64,000 nt of DNA from positions 186,001-250,000 of the forward strand of contig JAAOMT010000577.1 in the NCBI GenBank assembly GCA_016748015.1. Reading direction: 5' to 3'. The notes under the pieces are model-generated. The model saw only the letters and a list, made by a program, of their open reading frames with translations, had not been told where the DNA came from and searched no databases. Shown here piece after piece: positions 661-31,679 of the stretch. Position 1 is the stretch's first letter. Every line of letters starts with the position of its first letter. Made by a program: the position numbers and the translations under genes. The DNA comes from Geosiphon pyriformis uo1 (Eukaryota > Fungi > Glomeromycota).

Positions 661-949
661 AATTAAAAGTTTTTTTTTAATTTTGAATAAAGCTCAAATA
701 TTATTTAGCATAATATATTAGATTAAGTAATCTAAACTAGATGTGAATCATGTATTTTTTATATGTGATCAGTTATTTAAGCCAATTAAAGCAATATTAT
801 AAATCTATATTAACAAAAACCATATAATTTATAGCTAAAAAAAACTATAAAGCTTATGTAAACCAAAATTAATATTATATGTCTTTGTAATTCTAAGTAA
901 TCTAATAATACTATTAAAGAACAAAGAAAATAAACCATAAATTATTGAA

Positions 950-3900
950 GATACAAAACTATTATGTACAATTAATCATTTTTTTTCATAATTGTTTTAT
1001 ATTTAAATTTTACTAATTACACTTTAACATAATAGATTATTTCCAAGTCTTATACAAAGTCAATAATTTTCTTACTTACAACTTTGGCACAACCAAAAAC
1101 AGAAACAGTTTCCAAATACTACTTCTTAAACACAAAATCTTTGCATAAAACAGTATAAATAATATTATTAAATATATATAAAAAAAGCATTTACAAGATA
1201 CAAAATAATAATAAACTCAAATCTGATATGGAATTTTTACCAAATCAAATATGATCCAAGTAAATTTTTATAAACAATAAAATTTATTCTGCACATAAAA
1301 AAATAATCAGAAAGTTCTATCTTTTTACAATAAAAACACAATACATTAGAGTATTTCTTATTATATAGGCACTTATAAACAGTAATAAATAAATGATAAT
1401 ACAAAGTCTTTATAAAATATGAATATAAACCAACAATAAATTTACTTATGAAACCAGATATTATATATAAGTCAGAATACCAAACTAACAATATCCAAAT
1501 TCAGTTTATATCTCTAATTATGTTTTTATTAATAATATTAAATCCAAATTCAATCTTTTAATAAACATGACAAACAGTTTTAAAAACATTTTAAGCAAAA
1601 TAATGAGCATTTTCAAATATTATCTTCTTACCAACTCTAATATATCTTTTTTTAACTAAAACAAAAAACACCAATTTAAATATACAGTTATGTTAACCAG
1701 CTTATTAGCATGTTTATTACTCAAAATATTTGAATGGTTTTTAATTTTACACTAAACAATACCCAGATTCTTACACCTAATAAAATTTACAATATAATAT
1801 CTCTTAAGTTAACAATAATTGTAAAAGTCCGATACAAAAAATTCAATTTTACAGTATAAGTCTTCAAAGTAATCTGGCTGTCTAAATACATTATTATTGC
1901 ATTAAAAACAGGAACATATTCCAAGATTAAAGCAATTATCTATAATTTTGCCAAGATAGAAAAAACCAAACTTCTAACTTTAACATTTGTACTTAGATTT
2001 AAGATAAAAAAAATACAGCTATTCCATATCTTATGACATTTGTATTTAAATTTTTCAAAAACTTATCCATATAAAAATTAATAAAATCTAAATTAACATT
2101 AAAAAGACAATACTTTACTACAGAAAAACAACTGAAATCAAGAACATTTAAAAGTTAAAAGCCACTAATAAGTAATTGATTAGCTAGATAAAAACCAGTA
2201 TTAACCAATAATTATATGCTAATTTAAACCAAACAGGAACTAGGCTTTTAGGATTAAGTCTTTTCCAATAATAAAAACTTTTTTAATAAAAAATCAACTC
2301 TTTTTTGTTATATAGCTGTTCAATAAAAGCAATACCAAATTTTCTAAGTAAATAAGAAATATTATAAAACATTAAACTTTTTAAAATAGAAAACATTAAA
2401 GTACTACCAAAAAAATAAAATGCAAAGAATAAATTGTTCATAAAAAAAACATTATAATTTAATAAATTCTTATTATATTAGCTAAAAAATTGTTAATTAG
2501 ACTGATTTCTAACTTTACAGAATACTGCAAAAAATAATTAGGAGATCAATTCAGCACTTGTAAATTTAAAGACCTATAATTAAACAAATAACTAAAAATA
2601 TTATTAATATTAACAAAACTTAATACAAAGGCCACTTTACTCTCTATTTGGATTTGTTTAAATATTTTCAAGTCATACAAAGATGAATAATAAAGAGTTT
2701 CATTGGAAAAATTTCTTGACAAATCAGTTTTTGTCTTCAAACTCCTCTTAATTAGCATATTTTATTTGTTGTTTATACTCTTAAAAACAAAACTAAACTG
2801 GATTTTATAACTAATTATGAGATACAATACAACCAAGACCAAATAAAAAAACTGTTTATTTAAAATAATCTTCTTCAAAATTATATTAACAAAAAACTTA
2901 AAATCCAAATAAGTTTTTATTAAACTGGACTTGAACAAACTTTTAGATGACAAAAAAATACTCAAATATCTATAAAACTCTCTTTTTTGTGTAATAAAAA
3001 TTGGCCAGCCACTTATTAATAATAAAGCATTTTTGATTTTTTAATTAATTAAAATAATCACTATTTTTTTATTGTTAATAAAAATATTATTAATATTAAA
3101 AATTTACTTACAATGTTCAAAATACACTAAATAGCAGTCTAACTATTTTTTATTCAAATTATGTTATTAATAAAAGCACTAGTTATTAGGTAAAAATTTA
3201 ACTTAACTTGGCTTTTAACTTTGCTAGTTTTAACAATAAACTAAGTATTAATACAATAATCATACAAACTTTTATGTTTTTTTACTTCACATAAGAGAGA
3301 ATTATAAAAAAATTTTCAAAGCAGAGAAAAAAAAAATTTCTTTTAGTTTAAACTATTATGTATCTAATACCCATCAATAAAATCATAATTTATTATAACT
3401 TAATTAATTTTGTTATTGTAAATACTACCAAAAAACTTATATATTTTTATTTAAAACAAACTGTTTTTTAAATAATGTTACCTAACAAAATCATAAGCCT
3501 TGTGTATATTTTGCAAAACCAGCTAAAGTTCACAATTCTTTTTTAATACATTTTTTATTACTAAGCCCATCATAAAAATAAAAAATTAAGTAGTAATATC
3601 TTTTAATACAGAAAAATTGTTATTGTAAAGAATATTAAATCTGTTACAAACCAATAAAATCTTATTAGAAAGTATTTTGAAAAGAATTTTTTGAGCAGTT
3701 TTGATTAATATAATTGGCTTAATATTAGTTAAAACATTTTTCCATTCATAAAATTTAAAAATTATTAATATTTGTATTTTTTTTCAGAATTAAGATACAG
3801 ATTTACATATTAAACAGAAATTCAAAAAATCTGTAAGCATTGTGAAAACAAAAGCATTGTAATGTTTTTAAAGTTTATTGGTAATATTAAACAGAACAGT

Positions 3901-5463
3901 GGTTTTTTTATTAGGCAAGTTTTTAATCACTTATAGGACATTATTATAAGTAATAATATTTATAATTTCAGAAAAAACACTATTATCAACATAATTTAAA
4001 AGCAGATATTAATAATACTATAGATTAAAAACATAATTCAACACTAATATCTTTTTTATCTAATTTTCTATTATTATATTAATCTTAAATTTAATCTTAT
4101 TAAAGTTTGAAATCAATTTATTATTAATAACCAAGTAATTTAAAACTATTTTTTAAAATAGACACTCCAATATACTTCTAATTATATAATTCTTATTAAT
4201 AGCAAAGCTTTCTATTGACTTGTTAATAGCAAATTTAATAATTAATTTTTCAGTTCTCAATAACTTTACAAGCTTGAAAGCATGATAAAATTTCTTCATA
4301 TCAAACAAAACAAATCTTATACAATCAAAATTAGCACTAGAATTCAAAAAAACCTGGACATCTAATGTCTTATTATTGTTTAAAAACATCCAGTGCTTTA
4401 TTAAAAAACAAACTTATTATTAAGTCTTATATGCAAAGATTTAACAATTTTTAAAACCAAACTTCTAACTTGTAAAATTTAAAAAATTTTTTGGTAAAAA
4501 CATTATTAAAATTTTTGAATTATTTTTTTTTAAACATTTTATTAGCCAATAAACACATTATTTTATAAATAACATCTTATATTGCATTTAGATCCAAGAA
4601 TCTTTTAGACATAACAAATTTATCAAAAAATATTGCAATATTATTTATTATAATATTTTTGAATTTAAACTATTTGGCATTATTAACACCTTTAAAATCA
4701 AACTTTTAACAATTTCTATTAGTCTATTTACAAAAAAAGTTTAATTATATATCAAGCAAACCACCTAACTTTACAAAAACAGAAACAATTTAATGATTAG
4801 TATTAAAATGCTTATTAATATTTAAAACTACATGATCTATTATTGCATTAATTAAACTTAAAAAAATAAATATGTAATTAATTGTTTTTTTAATATTTTT
4901 TAAATTTTTCTATATTGAAATATTTGCAATTGAGCTTTCCATTAAAAAATTAACCAGTCTTAGATTCAGACATTTTTTGAAATTAACACATTTGTAAAAA
5001 CCATTTTTATTGAAATTACCATTCAAGATTACAAAAAAAAATTTGTTTACAGACTTCACAATCAGCAAGTTGATTTTTTTAGCTTAAGCCAAGCATATTA
5101 TTAGAACAGTACTAAAATACAATTCTAAAATCGAAATAGAAAATTTATTTTTAAAAAACAACTTAATAAACAAAAGCTGACTAACAACTTTAAAAATTTT
5201 GCATACATGTTTCATTAAAGTAATGTTCATAATAATTACAATATCAGAATTCAAGTAACCAGAGTTGAAACCAGAAGTGAAAATTTAAATATTATTAAAC
5301 TTGTTAACAATTTATGGACAAATTTTTCTCTTCAATTTTATTTCAATAATAATAAAAATCAAATTATTTATTTCTTTATACCAATAAATAATATTTTCTT
5401 ACTTAGCAAAAATGTTTATACTCCTAATATTATATATAGTAATTTTTTATACCAAATCAGTTA
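950..5463 (-). pseudogene. LINE ORF2 relic (AP endonuclease, reverse transcriptase, RNase H, CCHC finger)
   Basis: Begins 'ITDLV*KITIYNIRSIN...IIEIKLK' (APE N-terminal NxRG..ETK-type motifs); catalytic Asp/Gly/Trp codons converted to Asn/Lys/stop. ORF-track fragments 1237-1491, 2546-2758, 2762-2965 and 4153-4389 belong to it. Confidence 0.8.
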
Positions 5464-5499
5464 TTATTAAAAAAAGATACTCAAACTTAAATTATTATT

Positions 5500-7347
5500 A
5501 TTTATCTTAACTAATAAGTCCATAATTATAATTAACAAATTGTTTATCTTTACTTTTAACTTTAAAACTATTGAGTAATTCAAAAATTCTACTTTTATAA
5601 TAGTATTACTATTATTGGCTGCACTTGAACTTTTACTTATTACTATATCTGTTCCTTGATTTTGTAATGAAAAGATTACTAATGATTAATATTCAGAATT
5701 AGGTTAAAAAACTATTAGCCCAAATGCATCTAACTTTTTAGTTAGCTTGTCAATTTGCTTTACAAGACTAGTAAAACTGTACTTAAGAACAGCAAATTTT
5801 TTATTTACTTTCAAAAAACCAATAAAAAAAATTAGCATCTAAAAATAAATCAGCACTAGAAAAAATTAAAGACAATACAAGAATTAAAATCACCTGCAAT
5901 TTAAGTCCAAGTTTTTTTACCAAATAAAACTGAATAAAGCAATTGGTATCTATTTCTTCTTATATATATTTGCTAAACAAACCTAATTTTAAGAATTAAA
6001 TATTTTTTACTATAATTACTTAGACTTTCACTTATTAAATATATATTAAATTTATAACTTAACTATTTACATTAAGCATAACAGACTAAAAAAAACCAGT
6101 TCGATACAAATTTACACTCTTAAAAACTAAAACAGAATTGATAGTGGTTTTTTTTAATGTTTTATTAACAAAACAAACTACAACACATTTGTTACATACA
6201 TAAAAACTTAGATTATGATCAATAAAACAAGTTTTTTATCATAAAACATTAATAAATTAAAAAAATCATGAACATTTGTCTTAATTAATAAAGTATAAAA
6301 AACCTAATAATAATCTCTAGTTATTCATGTTTATTTATTATTAATAGTCAGTATTATATAAACAGAATTTTTTCTCATAAGTACTAACTATTTAAATGTA
6401 ATTAAACCAATAATTTTAGATGATTTAAACTTGATCAAAGTTTTTTGTCAAAAACCAATAAGCTATATCTTAATTAATACAATTTTACTAAATTTAGAAA
6501 AAACTGACTTTACAATCAATTTAAAAAATTTACTGGAATTTTTTTGACAATAATTTCCTAATTAATATGACTGTTTATTTTTTAAATATTATTATTTACC
6601 AAAATTTTTTTATTAATAGCCATTTTTTTAGCCTTTTTTAAACTTTATTTTGATATAAAAAATAATTTGATTATTCTTGAAAATTTTAAGTAAATACTTC
6701 TCCAAAACTATCAACATAATAAAAATTTTTTTTTATTGCAATCAATTTATCATTATTGGTTTTGTTAAATACAACATACAACTTAATATTTAATATAAAA
6801 AATTTAATTGATTCAAATTTTTTTTTAAGATACATAATTTAACTACAAATAAATACTTGGTACTAAAAAACTTAGAAACCAGAAGTGTCAAAATGTTATT
6901 TTTGTCATTATTGTCACTTAAATTATTGAAAAATTTTTTTTTTGGCTGGTTATCCAAAGTATATGTTCTAATATACATTTTTTTAGGTGTAGTATTATCT
7001 ATTGTATTATCTATTTCTAAAGCATTTGAATTTACATAGCTAGTTTTTTTAATAATTATGTTTTTTATGTTTTCAATATTTAAAATACTACTAATATTGT
7101 TTGTTTTATTCACAACTTTACTATCTCAAAATTTAACAGAATTAATATTGCCTATTTTTAAATTAATAAATTAAAAAAACCAGCAGACAATTCAACTAAA
7201 CTGTTTCTAATATCAGGTTTTTTCAGTTTTTTGTAAAAAGTATTATAAAAGTAAACACTTTTTACATATTTTTTTTGTGCCACACTGGGTTCTCAATTCA
7301 GTTGAATCAAAATTTGACCTATTAGCAGAAAAGCTTACTAGTTCTAT
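5500..7347 (-). pseudogene. LINE ORF1 relic (RRM-type nucleic-acid-binding protein)
   Basis: Stop-riddled frame with an RRM-like segment; the ORF-track fragment 6790-7113 is part of it. Confidence 0.65.
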
Positions 7348-7388
7348 AGTCACAAATAAAGATATATTAAAGAAATAATTGTGAAATT

Positions 7389-7591
<203 letters not shown>

Positions 7592-8449
7592 TTATTTTTT
7601 TGGTAAATTTTTGCTCTTATTATGACCAAAAAATTAACAAAAAAAAAAGCTTTTACAATTTTTATAAGTTTTTTATTAAATATAATACTTTAAAAAAGTA
7701 TTAATTTTAATAATTACAATATTTAAATTTTTTTAAAATCAAATATAATAAAGAAAACAAAAAATAAAAAAAGTATAATTAACAATCTAGAAAACCAGCT
7801 TAATTTTAAAAACTATGTAACCAAAAAAAATTAACCAATTTGGTCTTAAAATTATTATTAAAAACAATAATTTAATTTTAATTAATTAAAAAAAACTTTT
7901 AATACTATTTTTTTTATCAATATAAATTAATAAGCAAAAAGTAGTATTAGCAATAAAAAAAGACTTAAAATAAATAATAACATGAAATTGCAAGTTAACA
8001 AACTTTAATTAATAAATACAATTTTATTAAAAATATTTAATATAAATTTAATATTATTAAAAGTAATATTAAAAAATATTACAAAGAGCACTAACAAAAA
8101 AATAAAAAATTAACAAAAACTACAAAAAACTTTGTATTTTTAACTGTTAATATTATTTTAAATATTAAAATTTTTAAAAATTATTTTATTAGTGCAAAAT
8201 TTTATTAAAAACTATGGTTTTTTTGGTTTATTATTATTATTATTATTTATATTGTAATTAGCTCTAAAAAATAATTATATTAAATAAATTTGTTTTTGTA
8301 AATTTATTGTAATTTGATCTTAATTAATTTAAGTAATTAGTTATATATAAAAAATATTTAATTTATATTTAATTTAAACTATTTTGGTTATATTAATTTA
8401 AATAATAATTGAATCTACTTTATTAAAAATTAAAAATTAAAAACAAAAT

Positions 8450-9730
8450 TATTGTTTATATTAATAAAATAATTATATAATACAAAATATTTAAAATTAT
8501 TAAATTTTAATTATTAATCTAAAATTTATATAATTCCTAATAAGATTTTTAAATATAATTAAAGACACAAATTTAAAACTTGAAAATATTAATAATTACA
8601 ATTTTTTTAACATAATATTTGCTGCTTTCTTATATTTTATATTAAAATTTAGTTTACAATAAAATTTAAAATAAAAAATACATTAATGTTTTTTTAATTA
8701 TTTTTGCAATTGTATTATTTTGTGCCAATAATTTGAGTTTTAAAAATTATTTGGTATACATAATAAAAGTTTAATTGTAATTATATTTTTTGTTTTTAAT
8801 TAAAAGTTGTTTAATAGTTTTTTTTTAATAAAATTTAATGCCTTTTTAATTTTTTATTATAATATTTTAATGTAAATACCACTAATTATTTGGTTTAAAA
8901 TATGTATTATGCATTTTTAATTATTTTTATATTTATTAATAAATTTTGTTTTAAATTTTGCTAAATAACAGTAAACTTTTGTGTTTTCAACCACTTTTTA
9001 CAATATGCAGCCATATTTTTATTATCAATTAATTTAATTGTTTTTTTGTTTTTTCTTGATATAATATTAACAATATATTATTAATTTTTTAATAATTTTT
9101 TAAATATTTAATTTGTTATATATATTTTAAATTTCATTCTTGGTAAACATTATTGCTGCAACTTTTAAACTAACATTTATTTTGTCATGACTATATTTAT
9201 CTAATTGTTTAAAGATATTTAAAATTCATTGAATTTTTTGTTTAATTTAGTTGGCATTTTGCCAAGTTTCAGAATTTTACTAGAACAAGTATTTATTTCA
9301 TGTAAAAAAGATTCAATATTGTTTACACTAATATATTGTGTAATTTTGGCAGTATTATTGGCTGTTTTTGTTTAATATTTTTCATAAAATGTTGATTTTT
9401 TTGGTTTTGCCTGTCAAATAAAGACCATGTTTTTGTTTTTCAAATGTTGAATTCTTATTTCATGCCAAATCCAATTTGGTTGTCATTAGTTTTGCTTGAA
9501 TTTTAGTCTCTTTTTTTAAATTAATCTTATCTCATCATCATCGTTGCCCCAATCTCTTTTCTTGCCACTTTTTTAATGTTTCTCCTTATTATTCCTCCCC
9601 ACCATCATTCCAATATTCCTTCTTGCCATTCTTCCAATAATCTTTCTTTCTATTTTCCAATAATCTTTTTCGCTATTTCTTTTCTTACCGAATTTGATAT
9701 TTAGATTTTTGATTTGGTCGGCCAGATGTC
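8450..9730 (-). mobile_element. Degenerate, internally deleted DDE transposase (IS630/Tc1-like fungal family)
   Basis: Minus-strand translation: 'DWGNDDD' ~9535-9555, 'HGLYLTGKTKKSTFYEKY' ~9375-9430, 'KTIKLIDNKNMAAYCKKWLKTQ' ~8980-9045, 'KMHNTYF' ~8900, 'CIFYFKFYCKLNF...KAA' (CIFYPKFHCELNFIE..WGAAK-type) ~8620-8685. Confidence 0.7.
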
Positions 9731-10070
9731 TGCTGATTTTTCCGAAATCGAGTCAATAACTAATATATAAATTTGTTCAGATATTGTCATTTTATCAGAT
9801 CCAATTTGAATTATTCACAATTCTATTTTTGCTAACAATTTTCGGGTGTAAACCATAATTCCCCGCCTGCGTCGTACAAGTTATAATAATTTTAGAGCTA
9901 CCTCTATGTTACAAATTCCAAATTAAAATAAATGAACCTGATTTATGAAGGTTAATTTTGTAGACGCTTTTTCAGGTATATTTGTTCTGACTGCTCTTTC
10001 CAAATACTCGCGGCATTTATCACATTTCTACGAACCAAAACCACAGGCGTCTTTCTTGAAAGGTTGAACT

Positions 10071-12531
10071 ATGGCTACCGAGCTAGATATTCGTTTAGTG
10101 GTAGCTGTGGGCAAGTGTTTTACCCATAGGAAAAATTTGTCAATGTATTTACTTTTGTTCTCCTTCGCTCCGCTATAACTTATAATTTTATTTTTGGTTT
10201 CTTTACTTTTGAAAAGATTTTGGTACCACATTTTCAACCTTTGCCTATGCAAATAAACGTAAGTCAGCTTGATGAATTTTTATTTTGTTTAAGATTTGCA
10301 ATCTCCTCTTGTCTGATTGGCTTTCATGTTTAGAAAACCCGGACGATATTGTAACAAACGACAGTTGGCCGGAACAGTCCGGTTCTTTTAAGACAAATAC
10401 TGCCCTTCAATATAATGATCAATTTCAAGTAGTCAAATGGTAAGTTTTTGAATTTAAGACTCGCAACTATTTTAAATAAATTAACGGAGTTAGGGATTTT
10501 TCTATTTTTATTTAGGGGTTATCCTGCCCTAGCTCAAGGTATTTTGATTAAAAAACCCATCTTTTTATCTATTAATTGCAGCGAATTGACCCTAATTTTA
10601 ATAAAGAACCCCAAGCAAAAAAGAAAAAGCGATTACCGGACGGCTCAGAAAATAAACCGGTTGAGTTATTTAAATTATGTTTGGCTGATAAGTTAACACC
10701 AGATCAGAAACCCGTCCTACCCCCAGGAATTGATCATAAACGAGCTATTACTGATTATTTACGGGAAATGGGTAAAGTAAGTAGAAAATCTTTAATAGGT
10801 TTTATTTAATCAAACTTCTTTTTACTTTTCTAATATTCCAATTTAAATGAATTGAATTTCATAGCTGATAATCGAGACTCTTTCATCCCGATGGCCCGGA
10901 ATCATATTTCCTCAACAAGTTCGAGTTGTCCTAACAGTACCTGCTGAGTGGCATGGTAAATTCACTAGATTTCACAATATTTTTAATGATCCTAATAGAA
11001 ATATTAAAATCTATCCTTTTAGATGAATCCAAAGCTTTTATGCGTCTATGTGCGTTTGATGCTGGACTCACAGATTCTTTAAAATCTGATAATCTGGAAT
11101 TTACTACTGAACGTGCGTACATACCCAATGATATTCAAAGTTTATTTCACTATTATTTTTACCTGATTTTGACTAAATATTTCTAGCTGAGGCTGCGGCT
11201 ATTCATTGTATATCAATATTGAAGGAACATCAATTAAGCGTTGGGTGTCAGTAAATTTTATTTAGAAAATTTTCATCACTTTAATCAAACAAAATTTTCG
11301 GTTAATTACTTTTTAATTTAATTTTTCAAATTAGCCTCATTCATGATTGTGGATTGTGGTGGTGGTACTGTAGATTTAACAACTAGGACATTGTTGCCCG
11401 GAAATAAATTGGGTGAAATCACTGAACGTGATGGTGCTCTATGTGGAAGTAGTTTTGTCGACAGAGAATTTGTACGATTCGTTGGACGCAAAGTTGGGAT
11501 GGGAGCGATGAACAAACTGAAAACCAATAATTATGGTCAACTGCAATACATGATTCAGCAATTTTGTATTAAAGCTAAATTCCCGTTTAATGGAAATCCT
11601 GCTGAATTTACAGCAAAGGATTTCGATATTGAGCGTGTTTGTCCTGCACTTATGAAATACGTAACGGGTGTTGCAGAAGAGCAAATGGAAGAAGCAGAAT
11701 GGCTGATTGAGCTGGATTTTGAAGCTGTCAAATCAATGTTTGATCTAGTTATTGACACTATTATAAATCTGATTCAAAAACAACTTAATGCATCAGAAGG
11801 CCGGGTCAAAAGCATGTTTTTGGTTGGCGGGTTTGCCGAATCTCAATATCTACAATTACGGGTGAAACAAGCCTTTTCGCGACATGTGCCCACTATTGCA
11901 GTACCTAAACATCCGATTGCAGCTATAGTTAGAGGTGCCCTTTCATATGGTAAGTAAGAATTTTGGAATTTTATAATAAACACATTTTAAAATATTCACC
12001 CATGCTTTTGAAAAGGTTTAAATATGGCGACAGTACAAACTCGAGTTTTAAAATGGAGTTATGGTGTTGAAGTTAGCTCTAAATGGGAAAAGGGTGACCC
12101 AGTAGAGCGTAAGACGCCGTCGGGACGCATATTTAGATTCCATCAATTAGCACAACGTGGTGCTGAAGTTTCGGTAGATCAAACTTTTAAGTATACCGCA
12201 GGTCCGGTAATTGCAAATCAAATGGATATGACTTTCAATATTTATATTACCCCAGCTGTTAGTGCTAGATATTGTGACGAAGACGGGATGAGAATGCTGG
12301 GAAAGATGAAGAGTGAGTATTCAAATCAATAGCATTCCTTTTCATTAGTTGTACTCCTTCAGAGTTATTAATTTTTGAGGCTTAATTGTAGTTGATCTAC
12401 CGGATCCTCGTCTTGGGAAAAGTCGGTTGGTTGAATTCTCTTTGTCGTTTGGTTCTATGGAAATCAAAGCTATCGCAAAAAATGTACGAAATGGTGGTGT
12501 TTACCAGTCCACTTTTGACTTAGAGTTTTGA
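10071..12531 (+). CDS. HSPA12-like atypical Hsp70 (actin-like ATPase domain), multi-exon
   Basis: Spliced reading MATELDIRLVVAV|DFGTTFSTFAYANK|QNPDDIVTNDSWPE...KTNTALQY..W|GYPALA..; 'VLTVPAEW', 'EAAAIHC', 'MIVDCGGGTVDL', 'LCGSSFVD', 'MFLVGGFAESQYL', 'AIVRGA'; stop TGA 12529-12531. First intron 10111-10216 is GC-AG. Confidence 0.92.
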
Positions 12532-14955: not shown

Positions 14956-14959
14956 ACTT

Positions 14960-22051: not shown

Positions 22052-22749
22052 CAATTTGCGAAATAGTGAGAATCACTGATTATGTCTATTAAGGATGATC
22101 TTTCTTAGAAGGTCTCATTTTATCATTAACTTTTCAGTCATGTCGTAATGTAGACGTAATTGGTCAGTGTGAGAATTAGCAATGGTGGTAAGATTTTCAC
22201 CTAATTGTTGAAATCCGGTACATTTACTTTTCTGGAAAATTCACTCCGAGATGATGCGAAAACATGTTTTCGAAAAAATAAATTCAAATAAGACGGATAC
22301 TCCCAATGTCTGTTTTTTTGCACATTAGAAAATTTTTCAATAGTCAGTTTTAAATAATTAATTTCAGACTGAGGCTTAAGGCAAGAGTTGGAAAATTTAG
22401 TGCAATTTCTGGCTTTTCAATAATTTTTGACATTAAATGTTAATTTTATCTTTATATGAGTATATTTTATCTTTTAAACATATTCGAGTTAATTTAATAA
22501 TCTTTGATTTTCTTAACATAATTCTGCTCTTTCGGATGGCAATACCAAGCATTGGATTCTTGATGTGATCAAAAGATGCGCCAAAAGAAATATTACAAAG
22601 TGCAACAGTGGTAGACAATAAAACCAAATATAGATTTTTATTCATCTTGATAAATGTATTTTTGCTTTTGTTGTTCAAATTAAAAGTCTTTAAAGAATAC
22701 AAAACTGTTGTTTTTTAAAAAACCAAAAAAGAAATTTTCTTAAAAATAA

Positions 22750-23764
22750 GAAAGAAGCTGTTGCAGTTATTAATAAAAATAAACATTTTTTTCTCATTAT
22801 CAAAGAAATTGTTATTTTTATTAAAATGTCCTTTGGGTAAAAAAAATTTGATGTTAGTTTGATATTGTCAGTATTTAGAATAAAAATAACACTAAAGCTA
22901 TTTTTAATCAGAAAAAAAATGGTTTAATAATAATTAAAAGTTGTTTAAGTTTGTATTAAATAAAAAATATATTTTTATAATATTTTGTTTAATTGTTTTT
23001 ACTGTTAAAAAACTTTTAATTATAGACATAAAATTTATAAAAAAAATATATATATATATTATATCATCCTTATTAATTAATCTTAAGTCTAAACGTAATT
23101 TAATTGTTAAAATTACAAATTAATTTCAATAAAATTATTAGTTAATTAATACTAAAATTATAAATTGAAACTTTAAAAAAGTTTAATTGTTTTACAAATT
23201 TTAATGTATGTATTATTTAATTATTATAACAATATTTATAAACAAACAAAATATTAACTTGGCAAAACTCTTAATCTAATTTTTTAAAATAAAAAATTTG
23301 CTTTTTATATTTACAACAAATTTATTTTATTAATTAACAAAAAAAAATTTGTATTATTATAGTATTAATAAACTTAATTACAAATTTTACTAAGTGAATT
23401 AAATTTAATATTTGAATTTTTAACAAATTTAATCAAAATTTAAAGTTCTTGTTAAATATAACAAAAAAAACTCTACAAATTAAATATTTGTTTAAACATA
23501 AATAATCAAACCAATAAATTAGTTTGTATAATTTTTTGAATACAATTAATGGCTTAAAAACAAATTTTAATAAATTAAAAAACAGCTTTATAATTAAAGC
23601 CAAATAATTTAAATTTTAATATTTATAATAATATTAATTCTAAAGTTTTTATCAAACACAATTTTTTTTAAAATACTATTTATTAAAATAACAACATTGA
23701 AAAAATTTCTGAAATCTAAAATAGCAATAATGTATTTTTAACAACTATTAAATTTAAAGTCGGA
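22750..23764. mobile_element. Degenerate TE relic flanking the Gypsy element
   Basis: Very AT-rich, CpG-poor block with the same mutational texture as the identified relics; no motif recovered. Confidence 0.35.
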
Positions 23765-24448
23765 TGTAACACAATAATAAATAACAAGAGAGAACAGTAT
23801 TGTATTGTAATAATAATAATAAAAAGATAAATCAATTTTAATGAGCAAATTGAATTAGTAAGAATTCAATATATAAGATCAATTTTATAAATATTTCAGT
23901 TGCTATTTTTTTTTAAAGGATAACAAGAAAATTTAAAAGTAGAGAAATAGTTTGTACTGTTAACAAAAAATAATACACTGGTATAATTCTATGTCTTATG
24001 TTAACACTCTTAGAATTTAATATTAAGTATTAATTATACTTTTCAGTAAAAATTTATTTAATATATTTTACAAAATTAACAATTATACAAATCAAAAAAA
24101 AGAGAAAAAAATAGTAAAAAAAAATAAAAAAGTTAAGATTGCTGTGTTGATTTTTGCTTTAAATAAATTTTTACAGTTTTGGGAGGTTTTGCTTATATAT
24201 TTTTAAAAAAATTAATAATCAAATAAGTAATTACATTAATAATTTGATTAATAATTAAGTTAATAATCGAATCAATAACCAAGTCAATAAATAAGTTAAT
24301 GTTCAAGTTATTGATCAAGTTAATAATTAGATTAATAACTATTTTTAAAAATAAAGTAATTAATTAATGACATTAATAGTTAATATATGTAATTAATTAT
24401 AATTAAGTAAATAAGTAAGACTAAAAAGTAAAAGTTTCAATCATAATA
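23765..24448. repeat. LTR copy A (3' LTR of the minus-strand Gypsy), contains ~12-bp tandem repeats
   Basis: Starts TGTAACA; aligns along its length to 29431-30080 (e.g. ttagaatttaatattaagtattaatt; aaaaagtaaaagtttcaa). Confidence 0.8.
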
Positions 24449-27400
24449 TTATTTTTCCAAAAAAATTAAGCTTTAGCAAAATAATTTATCTAAAATAAGT
24501 TCTGGAATTTTTATTTTAAAGCTAATTAATTTGTTAAAATTTTTATTTAGCAAGATATATAAAAGCTATGACAATATTAATTTTTAATTCAAGAGACCAA
24601 ATTTTTGTATAAGTGTTTTGGCTTTTTTTGCAATAGTCAAAATTCGTAGAATATTTAAATATATAATGCTTGAAATTTTTGTCTGAATTTTGAAGTTGTT
24701 TTTTTTAAAAGCTTTATATTTTCTATTATAATATTTGAGTTTTTTTTTATATAACAATATTCTATTTATAAGCAAAACTTCTTTTATTGTTTTTTTAAAT
24801 ATATTGAAAAAAGAAAATATTTTGAAAATTATGTATTTAAATATATGCTTTTCTATTTTGCTGTTAATTTTTTGTTTTTTGTAACAGTTTTTCATGAGTT
24901 AATAATAAAATATACTTTCAATTATTATTTGTTTTCTAATAATCAGTAAAATATTTAAGTAATTTTTTTTTCAATATTTGTAAATTATAAAAAAAGTATT
25001 TTACACATTTTAATTAAAGAAATATTTTTTTATGTTAATTAAAAACATGTATGTTTTGAGATTAAAATAACTCTATTTATTATTGTTTTAATGTTTTACT
25101 AATAAATATTATAGTTATTATAACAATTAGTAACCAATTAGATCTTTTATAGTATTTTTTTATTTGTATATTATAAACAGATTAATTATTAAATATTGTT
25201 TTATACTGATTTTACAAGATATAAAATTTATTGTTTAGTATTTTGTTGATTATAAATGGTTTTTTCTAGCGACTTAAAAATTTGTTACCAAAAATATTGT
25301 CTTAATCTAAGTGGTATTCAAGAATTAAGTTACCAATATTTAAAGAAGAATATTTTTTTTTGTAAACAATTATTTATGTTTCTATCAAAAAATCTAAAAT
25401 TGTTTTTATAATTAAGTTTGGTTATTTTTTTAAAAATACAGTCTTAATATTGGTTTTAATAATAACATTATTATTCATCTGTAAAATAAGTAGAAAGTTT
25501 CATAATTAAATATATTATAATTTACTGTTTAATAAATAAAAAATATTGAAAACAATAGATTTGTTTTTTTATTGGTTTTTTTTTAATGTTTTTTAGAATA
25601 TTTAATTAAAACATTTTATTAATCTATTAATTTAGAGATAATAAGAAGAAAATTTGTGACGTATTTCAAGTTTTTCAAAAGTTTTTTTTACTAATAAGCT
25701 AAGAAAACTCTTTTTTTTTATTTGAAAATATTCCTCAAAAGTATTTATGTTTATATATAAATAAAATTGACAATTAAAATAATTGTTTAATCTAGTATTG
25801 TTCTTGCTTTTATTTATTTTGTTGAATAATCTGTAATTATTATTATTAAAAATCCAACAAAATTGATTCTAATTCTGTTAAAAAACTAATCAAATATTAG
25901 ATAAATGTTTTTTTAAATTAAGTTTATCTTTTTATTAACAAGTATTACAAGTTTTTATGTATTTTATTATATTTTTTTTTAAGATTAGTCAATAATATCT
26001 TGCTAAAATCTTTTGAATTGTTTTTGTTTTTTTAGAATGTTTTGCTAAGAAATTAATATATATATTATATCATAATTTTTTTCTTCAAATCAAATAATTT
26101 TTTGGAGTTAATTAAAATTTTTTTGGTTTCTTTAATATAATTAATTTTGGCAAATTAAATAAAAATTTAATTTTTTTAACAAATGTTCTCTTTATTGTTA
26201 ATTGTATTTTAATAGGTATTGTTTTTTATTTAAAAATTTAATAAGTATTGAATAGTTTTTTAAGTTTGTTTTTAATAATTAATTTAATTAATTGTTACTA
26301 ATTTGTTTTTTTACTAAATAATTAATCAAAATAAAATATTTGTATTTTGATTGTTCATTTTTTTATAATATTTAATGTTAAAATCATATTTGTTTAAATA
26401 TATTATTCAACAGAAAATTTTTTTGTAATCTAGTTTTCTTTTGTTTTTTAATTAAATTAAGATGTAATAATTAGTATAAATATTAAATTGTTTTTTAAAA
26501 ATTATTTATGTAGATTATATTATAATTAAACATTTTTTTAAAACAAAATAACACTAAAAAAAATATTAGAAGCATTATTATAAAAAATAAATAACTTGTT
26601 AAAATTAAATTGTTTTAATATAGACTTAGTAATCAGTTTTTTTTAAAAGTTTTAAATATTTTTTGCTAAGAAATATTTTAATACTAATAAAGAAATTTTT
26701 TATGAATTTTTAATAATAGAAGACTAATTTAAAAAAAATTAAAATTTTAATATATTCATTAATTATTAAAACTTTTGTACTTTTTTATTTTGGTTGGATT
26801 TAAAAAAATTCTATTTTTTATCACAAAATAATTTAAAAACTGAGTAAATTATTATTTAAAGAATAATTTAATTAGATTAAAGTTTAATATTTCTAAGAAA
26901 ATTAAAAACTTTTTGAAGATAATTTAAGTATTTATTCCAAGTTTTTAAATATAAAATTATATTATTAAGAATTAAGCTGATTGGTTCCTAATATTTGAAA
27001 AAACTCAAACATAATTTGTATTTGTTACTTAAAAAATAAAGAGAATAGTTGTATTAGCATTAGAAACAAGAACTATGTTATTAATATTTTTATTTTACTT
27101 TTTTTTTAGTTGTTATTTAAATATTCTTTTAAGCATATTATAATATAGCTAATAAATAAGTTTTCTATCAACTACTAAATTTTTGCAGTTGGCTTAAAAA
27201 TAGTAAAAACTAATTTGGCTTTTTTTTTCAAAGTTTTCGGAATTATTAAAATTATTATTGTTGTTGTTTTGCTGTTATTGTTGTTAATATTAAATTACTT
27301 TTAGAAATACTGTTTAATATTAATATTTAACTATAATAGATTTTGCTTTAATACAAATAGTGAATTTATAAAGTTTGCAATTAAAAAGAATTTTCGCTTT

Positions 27401-27866
27401 TTTTAATCATTTATTTCCGACAATTATTGTGTAATTTTAGTTTTTAATATTTTCATATTAGTTTTAATAAATATATTATTAATTTAAATAAAAATAGCTT
27501 TAATAATTTCTAATTTTTTTTTGTTTTAATAAATATTAGTTATTAATTTGATTAATAATTTGGCAACTTTTTTTTTAATTGCGTTTAAAAAATACTAAAC
27601 TATAACACTAACTAAAAAATTATTATCTAAATTAAGTTTATGAAATATTCAATTATTTGACTTTTATAAATAAGAAAAATAATATTATTGCTAATAATTA
27701 AAGTTGTTTATTATAAGTACTTATTGGTTTTAAGCTGCCTTTTTTTTGAGTATTAATAATTTTCAAAGATTTTTTTAAAACTAAAAATGTGTTATTAACT
27801 GACCAAAAATAATATAAACAAGTGTTTCTATTAAATTCTTGACTATTAAATAAAAGTCTAATTTTT

Positions 27867-27972
27867 GTGGCTAGCCACATGTAGTAAGTGCGTGAGTCGC
27901 GTTTAGTTTAGGCCACTTAGTCTGGCTCTATGTACTAGATAGCGGTTGGGCTTCACTCGGTAAAAAAAAAAA
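27867..27972 (+). mobile_element. 106-bp 5'-truncated LINE 3'-end insertion with poly(A) and 9-bp TSD
   Basis: Flanked by CTAATTTTT (27858-27866 and 27973-27981); ends in A11; ungapped alignment to the reverse complement of 683-776. Confidence 0.88.
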
Positions 27973-29430
27973 CTAATTTTTAAATAATTTTTAATAATTT
28001 CAACTTTGGTAAATTTTTAAATAAGTTTAATTTTAAGATTTTATTCTTGTTGTTAAATATTAAAATAATTGTATTAAAATTTAGATTTAAATTTAGATTT
28101 TGTTTTTTAGATTTAGTTTGGCTTAATAGTTTGTTATTGTTTTTTTGAAGTTTTATGTTATTATTAATTAAACAAAAAGTGTTCTTCTTTTTGGTTTGTA
28201 TTTTTACTTTTAGAAAGTATGTTTATTAGTTTAAAGATTGATATTCTATTGCTTTAACTAAAAAATTTTTCCAAAAAAGTTTGCATAAACTTGGTGAGTA
28301 TTTTAATTAAGAACTTAATTATTATTGTTTTTATTGTTTTGTTAATTGTTATTTTTAAATTTAGAAAAAGTATTAACAGATTATTGCAGTTTTGTGTTAT
28401 ATAATTAATATTTTCACATTAATAATAAACTAAAAAATTTTAATTTCTAGATTTTGAATTATATTGAAACTGTTAAAACTAATTATAATAGAACTAGTAT
28501 TAAAATCTTAGAAGTTTTTGATTTTTTTGTACTATTCAGACTATAAGTTTCAAAATTTGTTGTTAATCTATTAATTAATTATTTGTTAAAATCTTATAAA
28601 CAGTAAATAATATATCAATTATTTGAAAAACAGAAATAAAAGCTAGAATAGTTATTAAAAATAAAAAAACATTTTCTAAATGTATTCTTTAATTATTTTT
28701 TATTTGTTAAATTATCTTTATTGTTATTTCTTATATTAAATTATTTTTTATAAGAAATAATCAAAAAACATAAAATAAGTTTGTTCTTAAATTTTTGATA
28801 AAAAAGTGCATTTTATTTCTTCTTAAGTTTACTTGTTTTAATTTTTAAATTACTTTAATATATTTAGTAATTATTTTTTTTGGACTTTGTATTTTTTTTA
28901 ATTTTTTTTTATTTAGATATTAATATTAATGTTTTAAATTTTTTTAAATCTAATGATAAAAAAAGTTGTGTTTTGGTCAGCATTTTTAAAAGACCATTAA
29001 AAAATTTGTTATACAGTTTAATTAGCAGTTTCTTAAGTAAACTATATAATAAAATTTTTTTAAAAATATCTTTTAATTATTTAAAACTTGTAATTACAGC
29101 TTTTTTAAAATTTTTAAGCATTTTATAAAATTTTAGAAGTTTTTTTTGAACAAAAATAAAGAACTTATTAACAATTTAAACCAATTTAAATATCTTAAAA
29201 AACTAATAAAATATCTGCTTTATTAAAAACCATAATAAATATTAGAATTCAGATTTTTTAATCTGAATAACTTAAAAAAAATTAAAACAGAAGCTGTTTG
29301 ATAATTTAATTATGTATTATAAAATAATTTCAAATTTTTTGTACTAAAAAAGTAATCATTTATATAGATAATAAATAATTTCAAAATTTAACAATTTTAT
29401 AAAAAATTCTATTTTTATATTATAATTAGA

Positions 29431-30080
29431 TATAATATGTTAATAAATAATAAAAAAACAGTATTGTATAGCAATAAAAATAATAAAAAAGTAATTTAAC
29501 TTTAATAAGTAAATTAAATCACTAAGAATTTAATATATAAAATTAACTTTATAAATATCTTATTTATTTATTTTTTCAAAAGATAACAAAAAAGTTTAAA
29601 AATAAAATAATAATTTATTCTGTTAACAAAAATTAATACATTAATATAATTTTATGTTTTATGTTAGTATTTTTAGAATTTAATATTAAGTATTAATTGT
29701 ATACTTTAATAAATATTTATTTAATATATATTACAAAAATTAACAATTATACAAACAAGAAAAAAAAATAAAAAATTAATATTATTGTATTAATTTTTGT
29801 TTTAAATAAATTTGATATATATAAATTTCTACAGCTTTAAAAAATTTTGTTTATATATTTTTAAAAAATAATAATAATTAAATCAATAATTACATCAATA
29901 ATTAAGTTAATAATTACATCAATAATTTAATCAATAATTAAGTTATTAATTAAGTCAATAATTATATTAATAATTACTTTTAAAATAAAATAGCTAATTA
30001 ATATTATTAATAATTAATATATGCAATTAACTATAATTAAAAATAAATAAAATTAAAAAGTAAAAGTTTCAAATATAACA
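29431..30080. repeat. LTR copy B (5' LTR of the minus-strand Gypsy)
   Basis: Ends ...TATAACA at 30080; start TATAATA is the transition-mutated form of TGTAACA; homologous to 23765-24448. Confidence 0.8.
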
Positions 30081-30599
30081 ATATTATTAATTTTAAAAAT
30101 TGTATAATTAAAAAAAACATTAATTAATTTGGTCTTAAAAATATTTTTTAAAATAAAAAACATATTATAAAAAATCATAACAACAAAAACAGAAACAAAA
30201 TCAAAAGTCAAAACAAATTTACAATTTTAATTAATAATAATATTTTAAAATATAAATTTTAAACAAAAAAGCTTAAAACACAATCTTTACATAAATTAAG
30301 TTAAATCTTAAAAAAACACTAAACACAAAATAAAAATTACCTGCTTAAAAATTTTTTAATAATTAGTAATTTTTGTAAATATTATTAATATTGGCATAAT
30401 TTTCAAAAAAAAAAGTTGTTTTAATTTTTATATTATTAATCTAACTTTTAAAATTAAATAAAAATAATTAAACAATAATATGCTTTTAGTGATAATTAAA
30501 TATTATAATTGGTGTTGGCAAAACAAAATTAATATAAAAATTAGCAATACAAAAAACCAAACTCTTATTTTTTAAATAAATAAATTTTAAAACAACAAT

Positions 30600-31679
30600 A
30601 ATAAAAACACTTTTTTCTTTTTTGCTTTTAAAAAACACTCTTAATTTAATTGGTATTTAAAAAACAATTACTAATTTTCTAAGTAAGTAATTTTTAAAAT
30701 CAAGTTGGTTTATTTTAAAACTGTATTTTAATTTTTATATAAATTTATTAATTTAAAATTGATTATTAAAAACAATATAAAGCTTTTCTGAATAAAGTTT
30801 GTATTTCAAGTTCTTTTAAATGCTGCTGTTTGAATTAAATTTGCTAAATTACCTGTTTTTTACTACTCTTGAAATTGCAAATTTTTTTGTAATATTTAAT
30901 TTTGATTTTGCTTTTGCTTTTGCTGCTATAGTTTTTTATAATGTTTTTTTAATGTAATTAAAAATGCTCTTAATATTTTTGGTAAAGTTTTTGATATTAA
31001 ATTAAAGTTTGCTTATTTGTAGTAATATACTATTGTGCATTTTAAGTTTTTTAAAGCTGTTCTTGTTATTGGTTGGTTTTGTTAGTTAAGAATAATGTCA
31101 AGATTTTTTTTTTTTGGTGGTACACTCTTTAAAATTAGTGAATTGGTTCCTTAGATTAATAATCAAATTTGTTTTATTTTTTAGTATTTTGATAATTATC
31201 ATCAAAAATTTGTTATTGTTATTTTTAAATTCAAAAAAGCATATAATAATACTGTTTTTAAGACTGGACTCTTATAAAAAAGTCATATTTTATAGAAAGC
31301 TTCTAGATGTTAATGCTATTATAAATGTTAAAATTTGGAGCATTTAGTTTCTAATTGTAAAACTGTCTTACTGGTTTGTAAAAACTCTTTAAAGCCTTTA
31401 ATTGTATTTAAGGTTCCAGTAAAATGGTCTGCTGGTTTGATATTTAATATCAAAGACTGCTGTTTTTCTATTGTTACAAATGTTTTCTAACATGACATAT
31501 AAATCTAAATTGAAATTTCTTGAGTCAAATTAAAGATGAAAATAAATTTGCCAACTATTTTGGTAAGATAAAAGTACTTGGTGAATTTGGGTTGAAAGAT
31601 AGCTAAATATTTATTAACTTAGGTCTAAGTGGCTGGTCATGTGTAGAAATATGTATAATCTACATTTATAGTTGTAACA
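30600..31679 (-). mobile_element. 5' part of another LTR retrotransposon relic with a 208-bp LTR (31472-31679)
   Basis: Segment bounded by perfect inverted TGTTACA (31472-31478) / TGTAACA (31673-31679); a related terminus recurs at ~60785-60842; adjacent CpG-free internal region. Confidence 0.6.

Follow-up and report, generated by a model that had tools for sequence, protein, structure and literature searches.

Eroded repeat blocks and gene blocks in the window

The window that we analyzed is a stretch of 64,000 nucleotides from the genome of Geosiphon pyriformis; the whole analysis rests on one assembly (GCA_016748015.1). AT-rich blocks at 5-9689, 14.8-17.8 kb, and 22.7-31.95 kb are dispersed repeats with matches elsewhere in this genome. 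Between them lie two gene blocks, at 9.7-14.8 kb and at 17.8-22.7 kb, whose DNA is unique. An additional AT-rich block (57483-60963, GC 0.10-0.15, with weak repeat matches) lies beyond the part covered by the preliminary description of this DNA (670-31679).

The first AT-rich block contains an eroded copy of a LINE-like retrotransposon (670-7495, reverse strand) that contains endonuclease, reverse transcriptase, and RNase H; its GC content is 0.19 and CpG is almost absent. The RNase H homology lies at 1444-2011, and the corresponding ORF matches proteins of G. pyriformis only, in agreement with the preliminary description, which had placed this DNA in Glomeromycotina. Next comes an extremely AT-rich mosaic of repeat fragments (7521-9689, GC 0.07-0.15), including a repeat (8925-9685) that ends at the gene-block border; where GC is below 0.1, family assignment is weak, as the matches there are dominated by A/T transversions and gaps. 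The second block (14800-17800) is free of CpG and has no covering RNA contigs. An old AT-rich repeat family is represented in it by one copy (15032-16672), and short pieces of repeats lie at 16673-17450. The third block contains an eroded, Gypsy-like LTR retrotransposon (23735-30100, reverse strand; LTRs at ~23740-24480 and ~29400-30100) and further eroded repeat DNA (30494-31950) that reaches the next gene-block border. In this last stretch, of which 30594-31336 belongs to the AT-rich family of 15032-16672, the window's copy has undergone less erosion than related copies (56 vs. 14 directional differences in one comparison).

The gene block at 9690-14800, which served as a control, contains a spliced gene on the forward strand and a hexokinase gene on the reverse strand (12935-14705; Pfam Hexokinase_1/2), and its sole repeat matches are exons of distant paralogues. 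Its exons have GC of 0.40 and CpG o/e of 0.92. Its introns (11949-12014, 12313-12391, 13016-13098, 13679-13746, and 14352-14475) are supported by spliced RNA contigs and have GC of 0.267. The other gene block (17800-22700) contains a Kelch-like ORF and a Sel1-repeat gene (20831-22054, reverse strand) and is normal in GC and CpG.

As the preliminary description had reported, the borders are sharp and the adjoining genes are normal: GC and CpG change abruptly at ~9.5, 14.8, 17.8, 22.7, and 31.95 kb. There are 0 CpG per 250 bp in the repeat blocks versus 3-14 in the gene blocks. Composite RIP indices lie between +0.01 and +0.17 for the repeat blocks and between -0.41 and -0.78 outside them. The repeat blocks have GC of 0.15 (0.154), with observed/expected ratios of 0.18 for CpG, 1.96 for GpC, and 0.71 for TpC. 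In contrast, adjoining unique non-coding DNA has GC of 0.24-0.27 (0.235 for unique non-ORF DNA) and ratios of 0.85, ~1.0 (1.04), and 1.11. The contrast persists in GC-matched tiles; unique non-coding DNA does not share the signature of the repeats.

One-way loss of cytosines from repeat families

The LINE copy at 670-7495 has at least 49 matches in the genome, at 72-78% identity. An EM analysis of 20 copies gave frequencies of 0.50 for C>T and 0.52 for G>A, as against 0.045 for T>C, 0.028 for A>G, and 0.002-0.03 for each transversion; with more inclusive calling, 0.59 of C sites changed overall. In each copy, 54-67% of the ancestral C/G became T/A (0.61 in the window's copy), alongside 0.5-3% reverse transitions and 0.3-2.4% private transversions. 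The strands are equally affected within every copy, and the copies changed independently of each other (one pair shows Ts of 0.18 with Tv of 0.012). All 19 of the other copies, which lie on 17 other contigs, are eroded, so the erosion is family-wide and not regional. Because the copies were found by similarity, any that are more eroded than this sample would escape notice.

When C or G was restored in each alignment column where at least two copies retain it, we obtained an EN/RT frame of 1,627 codons that has 10 stops and bears the GGDFN and KAYD motifs. By majority rule, the longest open frame is just 159 amino acids, and it is at most 138 amino acids in the six copies that were checked. That restoring C/G opens the frame confirms the direction of change. 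At Trp codons, the copies now have TAA (0.35), TAG (0.20), or TGA (0.20), with TGG left at 0.21. The EM analysis, the opening of the frame, and the contrast between repeats and unique DNA all bear out the preliminary description, which had proposed a repeat-confined, one-way GC>AT change on both strands and had noticed Trp codons turned to stops. Of the altered motifs that it listed, the following were also located: GNFN (5009-5020), KAYD (3490-3501), and FINN (3163-3174) in the LINE copy and the integrase relic INRLIKCFN (25605-25631) in the LTR element, all on the reverse strand.

The LTR pairs, the internal parts of the LTR elements, and the AT-rich family at 15 kb behave like the LINE family. 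The two LTRs of the element at 23735-30100 share 76.7% identity, and each is estimated to have lost 0.52 of its C. Across five intra-element LTR pairs, identity is 72-77% and 40-60% of C is gone per LTR; these LTRs are very AT-rich, indels are frequent, and ts/tv is 1-2 in four pairs and 4.8 in the fifth. Eight other copies of the LTR element have GC of 0.12-0.18 and differ from the window's copy by Ts of 0.15-0.17 and Tv of 0.04-0.07. In the AT-rich family (14 copies), C>T is 0.53, G>A is 0.59, and pairwise Tv is 0.12.

Cytosines were lost in every context, in the order TpC (0.70), CpC (0.63), ApC (0.52), and GpC (0.48). By trinucleotide, the share mutated ranges from 0.42 (GCT) to 0.79 (TCG), and pyrimidines at -2 and +2 go with slightly higher rates. 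CpG sites changed more often than CpH sites (0.73 vs. 0.56-0.59), and they make up ~10% of scored C sites; ~90% of eroded sites are non-CpG, so CpG accounts for a minority of the changes. Because all contexts are hit, this is neither the CpA signature of Neurospora nor CpG decay. We saw no strand-coordinated tracts and, once per-site rates are controlled for, no residual correlation beyond 10 bp (z = 1.6). The single-strand, processive signature of one RIP round is therefore absent or was wiped out by saturation. Tandem CC>TT changes were not in excess either (at distance 1, the residual product is negative).

Borders, spared copies, and load

The borders of the erosion follow the ends of elements, not transcription units. 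At the poly(A) junctions of LINEs in L030, L034, L004, and L007, GC steps from 0.08 to 0.38 inside 50 bp. Within the eroded LTR element lies an unmutated 3' end of a LINE (27867-27972, forward strand), which is 106 bp long, ends in an A11 tail, and is flanked by a 9-bp target duplication (CTAATTTTT, at 27858-27866 and 27973-27981). This insert has GC of 0.48 and 5 CpG, matches the 3' end of the GC-normal LINE in L030 at 86.6% identity, and has at least 40 relatives at 88-99% identity. GC-normal LINE pieces of ~1 kb are uneroded despite at least 23 and at least 12 relatives at 81-90% identity, which argues against a pure homology trigger at Neurospora-like thresholds. Canonical, currently active, homology-only RIP is not supported. 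Two GC-normal LINE copies differ symmetrically from each other, with ts/tv of 1.6. The GC-normal copies are also CpG-poor (10 CpG per 1,500 bp at GC 0.38), so CpG methylation of transposons very likely exists.

The load on the LINE copies is decoupled from clock-like decay. The transitions are not paralleled by transversions and indels: C>T shares remain within 0.54-0.67, although private Tv ranges over 0.003-0.024 and private indels over 0.4-4 per kb. The fitted line is lambda = 12.5 x privTv + 0.79 (CI of the intercept, 0.74-0.90); for a 4-fold increase in private Tv, the slow RpC sites go from 0.478 to 0.510 and CpG sites show no rise. This departure from a clock suggests a fixed dose, not slow ageing. 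The private transversions may in part be differences between master copies before insertion instead of a measure of age. Loads are graded between copies, from ~0 in the window's 106-bp insert through light in L030 (11 vs. 0 directional differences) and intermediate in L025 (232 vs. 91) to that of the LINE family, so a time-dependent component exists.

A RIP-like process and its alternatives

The genome encodes a DNMT1 (C371:420-424 kb) in which a methyltransferase domain is accompanied by RFD and two BAH domains, and there are several further C5-methyltransferase loci. We sought RID in the G. pyriformis genome and identified none; DNMT1 alone was identifiable. Searches for the deaminase domains APOBEC_N, NAD1, Bd3614, LmjF365940, and OTT_1508 found none of them, with controls silent in three of these searches. 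The genome has just five deaminase loci of dCMP/CMP type, and no AID/APOBEC-like gene was identified in it.

These results divide the interpretation in the preliminary description. Change far above neutral decay and mostly outside CpG stands. A mutator active now is not supported, as the load resembles a fixed dose that ended and younger LINE inserts and the ~1-kb pieces are uneroded. Dependence on RID/DIM-2 is not supported either, given that DNMT1 was the only one identified. Its statement that every transposon class is riddled with such changes holds for the LINE, the LTR element, and the family at 15 kb; the 106-bp insert is unmutated.

RIP as known from Neurospora crassa and other Pezizomycotina (where it runs by a RID-dependent and a DIM-2/heterochromatin-dependent pathway) likewise makes one-way C>T/G>A changes on both strands of integrated repeats, leaves neighboring genes untouched, and yields stop-riddled, AT-rich relics with positive RIP indices and ~75-80% identity to each other. 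The per-base load in Geosiphon (~0.23) equals or exceeds the value of 0.12 that was reported for elements of Neurospora (PMC3318451). Geosiphon differs in having no CpA preference (YpC and CpG are preferred and GpC is spared), in the escape of the ~1-kb repeats, in having no identified RID, and in its lineage, Glomeromycotina. One study reported no RIP signatures in Gigaspora margarita or in Mucoromycotina (PMC8647823), and another described RIP-like signatures as a feature of ascomycetes alone (PMC12543289). The RIP-like TpCpG hypermutation of Pucciniomycotina (Microbotryum, Puccinia, and Melampsora) also occurs in non-ascomycetes without a recognizable rid, and its target trinucleotide is the top one in Geosiphon. 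However, the excess there is in TpCpG only, at 0.002-0.025 per base (PMC3318451), whereas Geosiphon lost 0.42-0.79 of sites across all contexts. A third comparison is CpG methylation of transposons followed by 5mC deamination, as in Basidiomycota and in Rhizophagus irregularis, which has a DNMT1-related enzyme and mCG on transposons (PMC8647823). In agreement with it, Geosiphon transposons are nearly CpG-free, GC-normal copies included, and DNMT1 is encoded. But CpG loss alone barely shifts GC (it is 0.38 in L030), and the eroded copies also lost most of their non-CpG cytosines.

A process of methylation and decay is a less probable reading, though one that we take seriously: recognized copies would carry dense 5mC in all contexts (for instance, by de novo methylation that small RNAs or heterochromatin guide) and would deaminate spontaneously until the family dies and targeting lapses. 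That CpG is the fastest class, the paucity of CpG in GC-normal LINEs, the encoded methyltransferases, the graded loads, and the independence of sites, as expected from spontaneous decay, are all consistent with this, and so is the methylation in R. irregularis. However, ~90% of the erosion lies outside CpG, and methylation in contexts other than CpG is not known from this group; calls in the R. irregularis study were limited to CpG (PMC8647823). Furthermore, the load stays flat as decay grows, including at those CpGs that are left. Per-site C>T is ~100-250x the private transversion load in the copies that have decayed least, an excess that surpasses the effect of 5mC known from mammals.

The remaining alternatives are all improbable. 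AID/APOBEC-like editing of retroelement cDNA, or of single-stranded DNA at retrotransposition, replication, or transcription, is disfavored: the preference for a 5' pyrimidine does resemble that of APOBEC3, but there is no strand asymmetry in any copy, the two LTRs of a single element diverged from one another, clustered strand-coordinated runs are lacking, the recent LINE insert is unedited, and the deaminase searches (with their silent controls) yielded nothing beyond dCMP/CMP-type loci. Slightly less probable still is ordinary old age, with ancient neutral repeats drifting to an AT-rich equilibrium while selection holds the GC of genes. An AT-rich genome (29% GC; PMC9453076), the many indels and low ts/tv of most LTR pairs, the pairwise Tv of the family at 15 kb, and the A/T transversions that chiefly distinguish the most AT-rich blocks would fit it. 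It is contradicted by LINE copies already short of 54-58% of C/G when private transversions stand at just 0.3-0.5% and reverse transitions at 0.5%; by the implied equilibrium GC of ~5%, far from that of unique introns and intergenic DNA, where GpC and TpC are normal; and by the symmetric differences between the GC-normal copies. We give the least credence to UV-type damage, with C>T at dipyrimidines arising in soil-surface bladders and transcription-coupled repair clearing genes but not silent repeats. The pyrimidine preferences on either side and the eroded block without RNA contigs agree with such damage; it is disfavored by the tandem CC>TT result, by the absence of the signature from unique intergenic DNA and introns, by borders at element ends, and by a load that does not rise with age.

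The data show the direction, size, and context of the change, its strand symmetry, its independence from copy to copy, its decoupling from clock-like decay, and its sharp borders at the level of elements. On balance, we think it somewhat probable that several transposon families underwent, after insertion, a RIP-like, recognition-dependent C>T hypermutation at a near-fixed dose, which then stopped. In such a process, mutation would strike integrated nuclear copies of these families and track the elements themselves. The C>T change would act on double-stranded chromosomal DNA, on both strands alike, on each copy independently, and in any context, with moderate preferences; each copy sampled in the affected families would lose ~55-65% of its cytosines before the process stopped. 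It would end at element junctions, with no effect on host genes or introns, on intergenic DNA, or on younger LINE inserts. The chemistry is presumably enzymatic deamination of C or 5mC in a recognition-dependent pathway, for which genes of the DNMT1 superfamily or methyltransferase-only genes are candidates. The dose might be limited by loss of recognition at ~75-80% identity, or the pathway might have been active only in past episodes. We found no publication on this hypermutation in Geosiphon. If the RIP-like reading is correct, Geosiphon would have had a RIP-like defense outside the ascomycetes, to which RIP is held to be confined.

Cytosine loss in the LINE family

The C>T/G>A hypermutation of transposons in this window is real and strong. 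We aligned positions 1000-7000 of the window, which lie in the LINE copy at 670-7495 (minus strand), with 19 other copies (loci L002-L020) from 17 other contigs of the Geosiphon pyriformis assembly. The 20 copies have GC contents of 0.16-0.23 and are 71-82% identical to each other, with few indels. An EM fit under a star phylogeny gave an ancestral GC content of about 0.38 and change frequencies of 0.50 for C>T and 0.52 for G>A, versus 0.045 for T>C, 0.028 for A>G, and 0.002-0.03 for transversions. This bears out the claim, in the preliminary description, of one-way GC-to-AT change on both strands, as no other class exceeds 0.045. Indeed, almost none of the pyrimidine columns has a C that is retained by every copy, and if a site is scored as an ancestral C or G whenever at least two copies retain C/G (inclusive scoring), then 59% of the ancestral C/G cells are mutated. 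C:G to T:A transitions dominate the repeats on both strands, as in Neurospora-type RIP.

A column tally that restores C/G yielded a minus-strand frame of 1,627 codons with 10 stops, 8 of which lie within the first 102 codons, and this frame contains the GGDFN (endonuclease) and KAYD (reverse transcriptase) motifs. The longest open frame is at most 159 amino acids under majority rule and at most 138 amino acids in the six actual copies that we checked. Catalytic motifs are altered at the kind of places that had been described before, and so are tryptophan codons, which were said to have become stops: in the eroded copies (that is, those that lost ancestral C/G) they read TAA (0.35), TAG (0.20), or TGA (0.20), and TGG is left in just 0.21. 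As the outcome is not TGA alone, this hypermutation would not be expected on its own to give rise to transposon genes of a TGA-only "code 4" type.

Every sequence context is affected, with trinucleotide extremes of 0.42 mutated for GCT and 0.79 for TCG. It is the base on the 5' side that sets the real preference: the mutated share is 0.70 for C after T, 0.63 after C, 0.52 after A, and 0.48 after G. Because GpC is spared, the relics have a two-fold excess of GpC. By the 3' base, the share is 0.73 for CpG, and CpC (0.59), CpA (0.56), and CpT (0.56) all lie below it, so a CpA preference is absent. A CpA preference is characteristic of RIP in Neurospora, whereas the Geosiphon relics favor C after a pyrimidine and CpG. 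The pattern in Pucciniomycotina is restricted to TpCpG (PMC3318451), in contrast to the effect on all contexts in Geosiphon. We also computed the standard RIP indices, with thresholds of at least 0.89 for TpA/ApT, at most 1.03 for (CpA+TpG)/(ApC+GpT), and above 0 for the composite. The repeat blocks are barely past these thresholds (1.07-1.08, 0.90-1.06, and +0.01 to +0.17, respectively), versus 0.74-0.90, 1.25-1.52, and -0.41 to -0.78 in the other blocks.

Eroded blocks and other transposon families

GC content is 0.10-0.21 at 1-9.5, 14.8-17.8, and 22.7-31.9 kb and 0.25-0.39 between these blocks, and each 250-bp tile contains no CpG in the AT-rich blocks versus 3-14 in the gene blocks. We located the composition steps at about 9.5, 14.8, 17.8, 22.7, and 31.95 kb, in agreement with the sharp borders and the normal GC and CpG content of adjacent genes that were first reported. 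Matches to dispersed repeats cover the AT-rich blocks (5-9689; 15032-16672, with fragments to about 17450; and 23279-31924), while the gene blocks between them are unique and code for a hexokinase, a Sel1-repeat protein, and a Kelch-like ORF. Unique DNA outside of long open frames served as the comparison, and its composition differs from that of the repeats: it has GC 0.235, CpG o/e 0.85, GpC o/e 1.04, and TpC/GpA o/e 1.11, versus 0.154, 0.18, 1.96, and 0.71 in the repeat blocks. This contrast in dinucleotides persists in GC-matched tiles. (Blocks with GC below 0.1, at 7.4-8.9, 40.6, 50.3-51.2, and 57.4-61 kb, were left out of the spectra because A/T transversions and gaps dominate their matches.)

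In the hexokinase block, spliced RNA contigs define five introns with GC 0.267; the exons have GC 0.40. In these introns (11949-14475, n = 5), we observed 1 CpG versus 7.4 expected, in a small sample of 420 bp; no such deficit is seen in the flanking exons, at CpG o/e 0.92, or in the intergenic spacers, which are normal. Spliced contigs from two RNA data sets span the hexokinase block and none covers the adjoining eroded block at 14800-17800, which hints weakly, as judged from RNA contigs only, that the eroded block is silent. Beyond the region that was first described, 57483-60963 has a GC content of 10-15%, CpG o/e 0.48, and GpC o/e 2.2. This block is probably another such relic, with matches that are too degenerate for a spectrum. 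An assembly gap of 20 N lies just beyond the right border of the eroded region (32834-32853). A tRNA scan of the whole window found none.

Erosion was seen in all sampled copies of three families, across many contigs. Element classes were assigned from motifs, from the opened frame, and from similarity at the protein level to an RNase H ORF; Pfam searches gave nothing usable for the eroded LINE, the LTR element, or the 15-kb family, in the window or in the other loci, when run on their longest stretches without stops. The family at 15.0-16.7 kb (window copy at 15032-16672) is older, with pairwise transversions of 0.12, C>T of 0.53, and G>A of 0.59, and its copies have GC contents of 8-22%, mostly 17% or less. 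The Gypsy-like LTR element (23.7-30.1 kb, minus strand) is described by pairwise comparisons and column counts only. Its LTRs have GC contents of about 0.10-0.15. In five intra-element comparisons, the paired LTRs were 72-77% identical, with an estimated C loss per LTR of 0.40-0.61; ts/tv is 1-2 in four of these five pairs and 4.8 in the other, and indels are frequent. Across the internal regions of eight copies (GC 0.12-0.18), a C or G is common to all copies in very few columns, and the internal pairs reported differ by 0.15-0.17 transitions and 0.04-0.07 transversions. Each LTR of the eroded window element carries a short array that repeats every 12 bp (24188-24378 and 29835-30037).

A probable dose, rival explanations, and candidate enzymes

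If the repeats were simply old, then transversions and indels should scale with transitions. We found instead that the C>T share remains within 0.54-0.67 across the LINE copies, among which similarity-based retrieval would overlook any that are eroded still further, despite an eight-fold range of private transversions (0.003-0.024; r = 0.54 with private indels), which may include differences between master copies. A fit gave lambda(C>T) = 12.5 x private transversions + 0.79, with a confidence interval for the intercept of 0.74-0.90, and the intercept is above zero in every context class (1.33 for CpG, 0.89 for YpC, and 0.60 for RpC). The six least and the three most decayed copies are four-fold apart in private transversions, yet their loads are 0.570 and 0.616, and the load at CpG is flat (0.732 versus 0.736). 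In the least decayed copies, cytosine loss is about 100-250 times as frequent per site as private transversion. Because the load barely changes over a four-fold range of private transversions, a constant-rate process is hard to sustain, even with heterogeneity among sites. Rather, the LINE copies look as if each received a similar dose, which then stopped. We dropped a pairwise regression of transitions on transversions as evidence, as 2p(1-p) is flat near p = 0.5, and used per-copy loads instead. Nor did we take a plateau near 75% identity to prove self-limitation, since it is partly due to retrieval bias.

CpG is the 3' context that is lost most often, but CpG-methylation decay is ruled out as the explanation because only 216 of the 2,083 scored C sites are CpG; most of the changes are at other sites, which are mutated at 0.56-0.59. 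Within each LINE copy, the C>T load equals the G>A load. A naive shuffle suggested strand coordination (mean z of 1.8 per copy), but this signal was gone after we modelled per-site rates (z = 1.6 overall). With per-site rates modelled, there was no regional clustering of mutations in the LINE copies and no residual correlation beyond 10 bp, and adjacent sites had a slightly negative residual correlation, so there is no excess of tandem CC>TT changes. The symmetry and the lack of runs or of CC>TT changes count against cDNA or single-strand editing and against UV-type damage. Processive single-strand events are thus without positive support, although saturation could have erased their trace. Editing of the AID/APOBEC type in particular does not fit these symmetric and unclustered loads, and the profiles APOBEC_N, NAD1, Bd3614, LmjF365940, and OTT_1508 had no match; for three of these five families the control searches stayed silent too, which leaves absence unproven. 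The genome contains dCMP/CMP-type deaminases at five loci only.

The preliminary description had proposed searching for DNA methyltransferases as well as for deaminases, and the former were found. A search of the genome with the PF00145 profile gave ten matches, spread over about seven loci. On contig C371 (420-424 kb) lies a DNMT1, in which RFD and two BAH domains accompany the methyltransferase domain. At C702:1326200-1327926, a methyltransferase fragment is interrupted by four in-frame stops and adjoined by a weak BAH match. The remaining loci are methyltransferase-only, and two of them (C666:681025-681548 and C657:820713-821336) are C5-methyltransferase-like with in-frame stops; the others are at C657:788 kb, C646:685 kb, and C692:422 kb. 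The stop-carrying loci could be dead paralogues or intron-split genes. No SNF2 domain lies beside any of the methyltransferase-only loci. Neurospora-type RIP is tied to RID (a Masc1/RID-type C5 methyltransferase) or DIM-2, and DNMT1 is the one type that we could assign among the PF00145 loci.

Copies that escape, and what the pattern may mean

Several loci carry 3' parts of LINEs with an RNase H domain (Pfam) that are protein-level relatives of the window LINE. An RNase H ORF from a related locus matched proteins of G. pyriformis only. Four of these are GC-normal, CpG-poor copies with an RNase H domain and a poly(A) tail: L030:2654-4153, L034:2680-3859, L004:7650-8607, and L007:6750-7821. Such GC-normal parts have GC contents of 0.38-0.42, and their poly(A) abuts DNA of 8-10% GC, with the switch in under 50 bp. 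GC-normal copies were found repeatedly inside or against relics of 8-10% GC; younger LINEs seem to favor eroded, AT-rich DNA as an insertion site. Two of the GC-normal copies differ symmetrically, with ts/tv of 1.6, which we used as the comparison for a normal spectrum. One of the CpG-poor parts (L025) is partly eroded, with 232 versus 91 directional differences.

The window itself holds an unmutated LINE 3' end of 106 bp (27867-27972; GC 0.48, 5 CpG, A11 tail) within the eroded LTR element, flanked by a perfect 9-bp target duplication (CTAATTTTT; whole site 27858-27981). It has at least 40 relatives of 88-99% identity elsewhere in the genome. An unmutated insert with relatives that are up to 99% identical implies that some LINE lineage was active recently. 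Compared with this insert, L030 has 11 C/G-to-T/A differences, none in the reverse direction, and 2 transversions, so even "GC-normal" copies are lightly eroded and loads are graded. Furthermore, the 50-bp borders and the nested insert imply that the process tracks elements and not kilobase-scale domains.

A duplication trigger (repeats of more than about 0.4-1 kb that are more than about 80% identical) would fit the three families that were hit, but GC-normal LINE pieces of about 1 kb escape. Full-length relatives with 81-90% identity number at least 23 for one such piece and at least 12 for another, and this identity rules out heavy erosion of those relatives. Thus, similar copies at Neurospora-like thresholds seem insufficient as the sole trigger. 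Either the process acted in the past on the families that were then present, or it recognizes its targets by another cue, such as small RNAs, chromatin state, or higher identity or copy number.

The interpretation that we favor is a RIP-like hypermutation of cytosines that targets elements, bears its own signature, and was given as a limited dose. A more specific proposal, which we consider unlikely, is that Geosiphon (Archaeosporales) possesses, or possessed until recently, a repeat-recognizing cytosine mutator of its own that evolved independently of RID-type RIP, used a DNMT1-superfamily or methyltransferase-only enzyme with a preference for YpC and CpG, and gave a self-limiting dose to whole families in rare, possibly sexual or parasexual, episodes; the stop-carrying methyltransferase-like loci could be its remains. 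Canonical RIP acts premeiotically, between fertilization and karyogamy, and this fungus is not known to have a sexual cycle.

RIP signatures were not detected in Gigaspora margarita or in Mucoromycotina (PMC8647823), and a kingdom-wide screen from 2025 found enrichment of RIP-like signatures in ascomycetes only (PMC12543289). A survey of transposons in Glomeromycotina that includes Geosiphon makes no mention of RIP (PMC11952901). According to a 2026 review, RID is confined to Ascomycota, and DIM-2 is found in Ascomycota and Phycomyces (PMC13297926). Our full-text literature search for Geosiphon or arbuscular mycorrhizal fungi together with RIP, whose scope did not extend to the two papers on this fungus's genome (Curr Biol 2021; Environ Microbiol 2024), returned no report.

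Repeat-directed C-to-T mutagenesis has been regarded as a speciality of ascomycetes, with a weak TpCpG form in relatives of rusts and smuts. If an early-branching glomeromycete indeed has a saturating hypermutation that is targeted to elements and differs in context, then such defenses arose more than once or are far older than thought. In that case, Kimura-type "age" landscapes of Geosiphon repeats would be strongly inflated, and the AT-rich compartment of this genome would be explained (the published assembly has 129 Mb in 795 scaffolds, with 64% repeats and 29% GC; PMC9453076). The unclassified C5-methyltransferase loci are a concrete target for enzyme discovery. Finally, if the dose turns out to be episodic, then rare nuclear events could be traced from sequence in a lineage that has long been treated as asexual.
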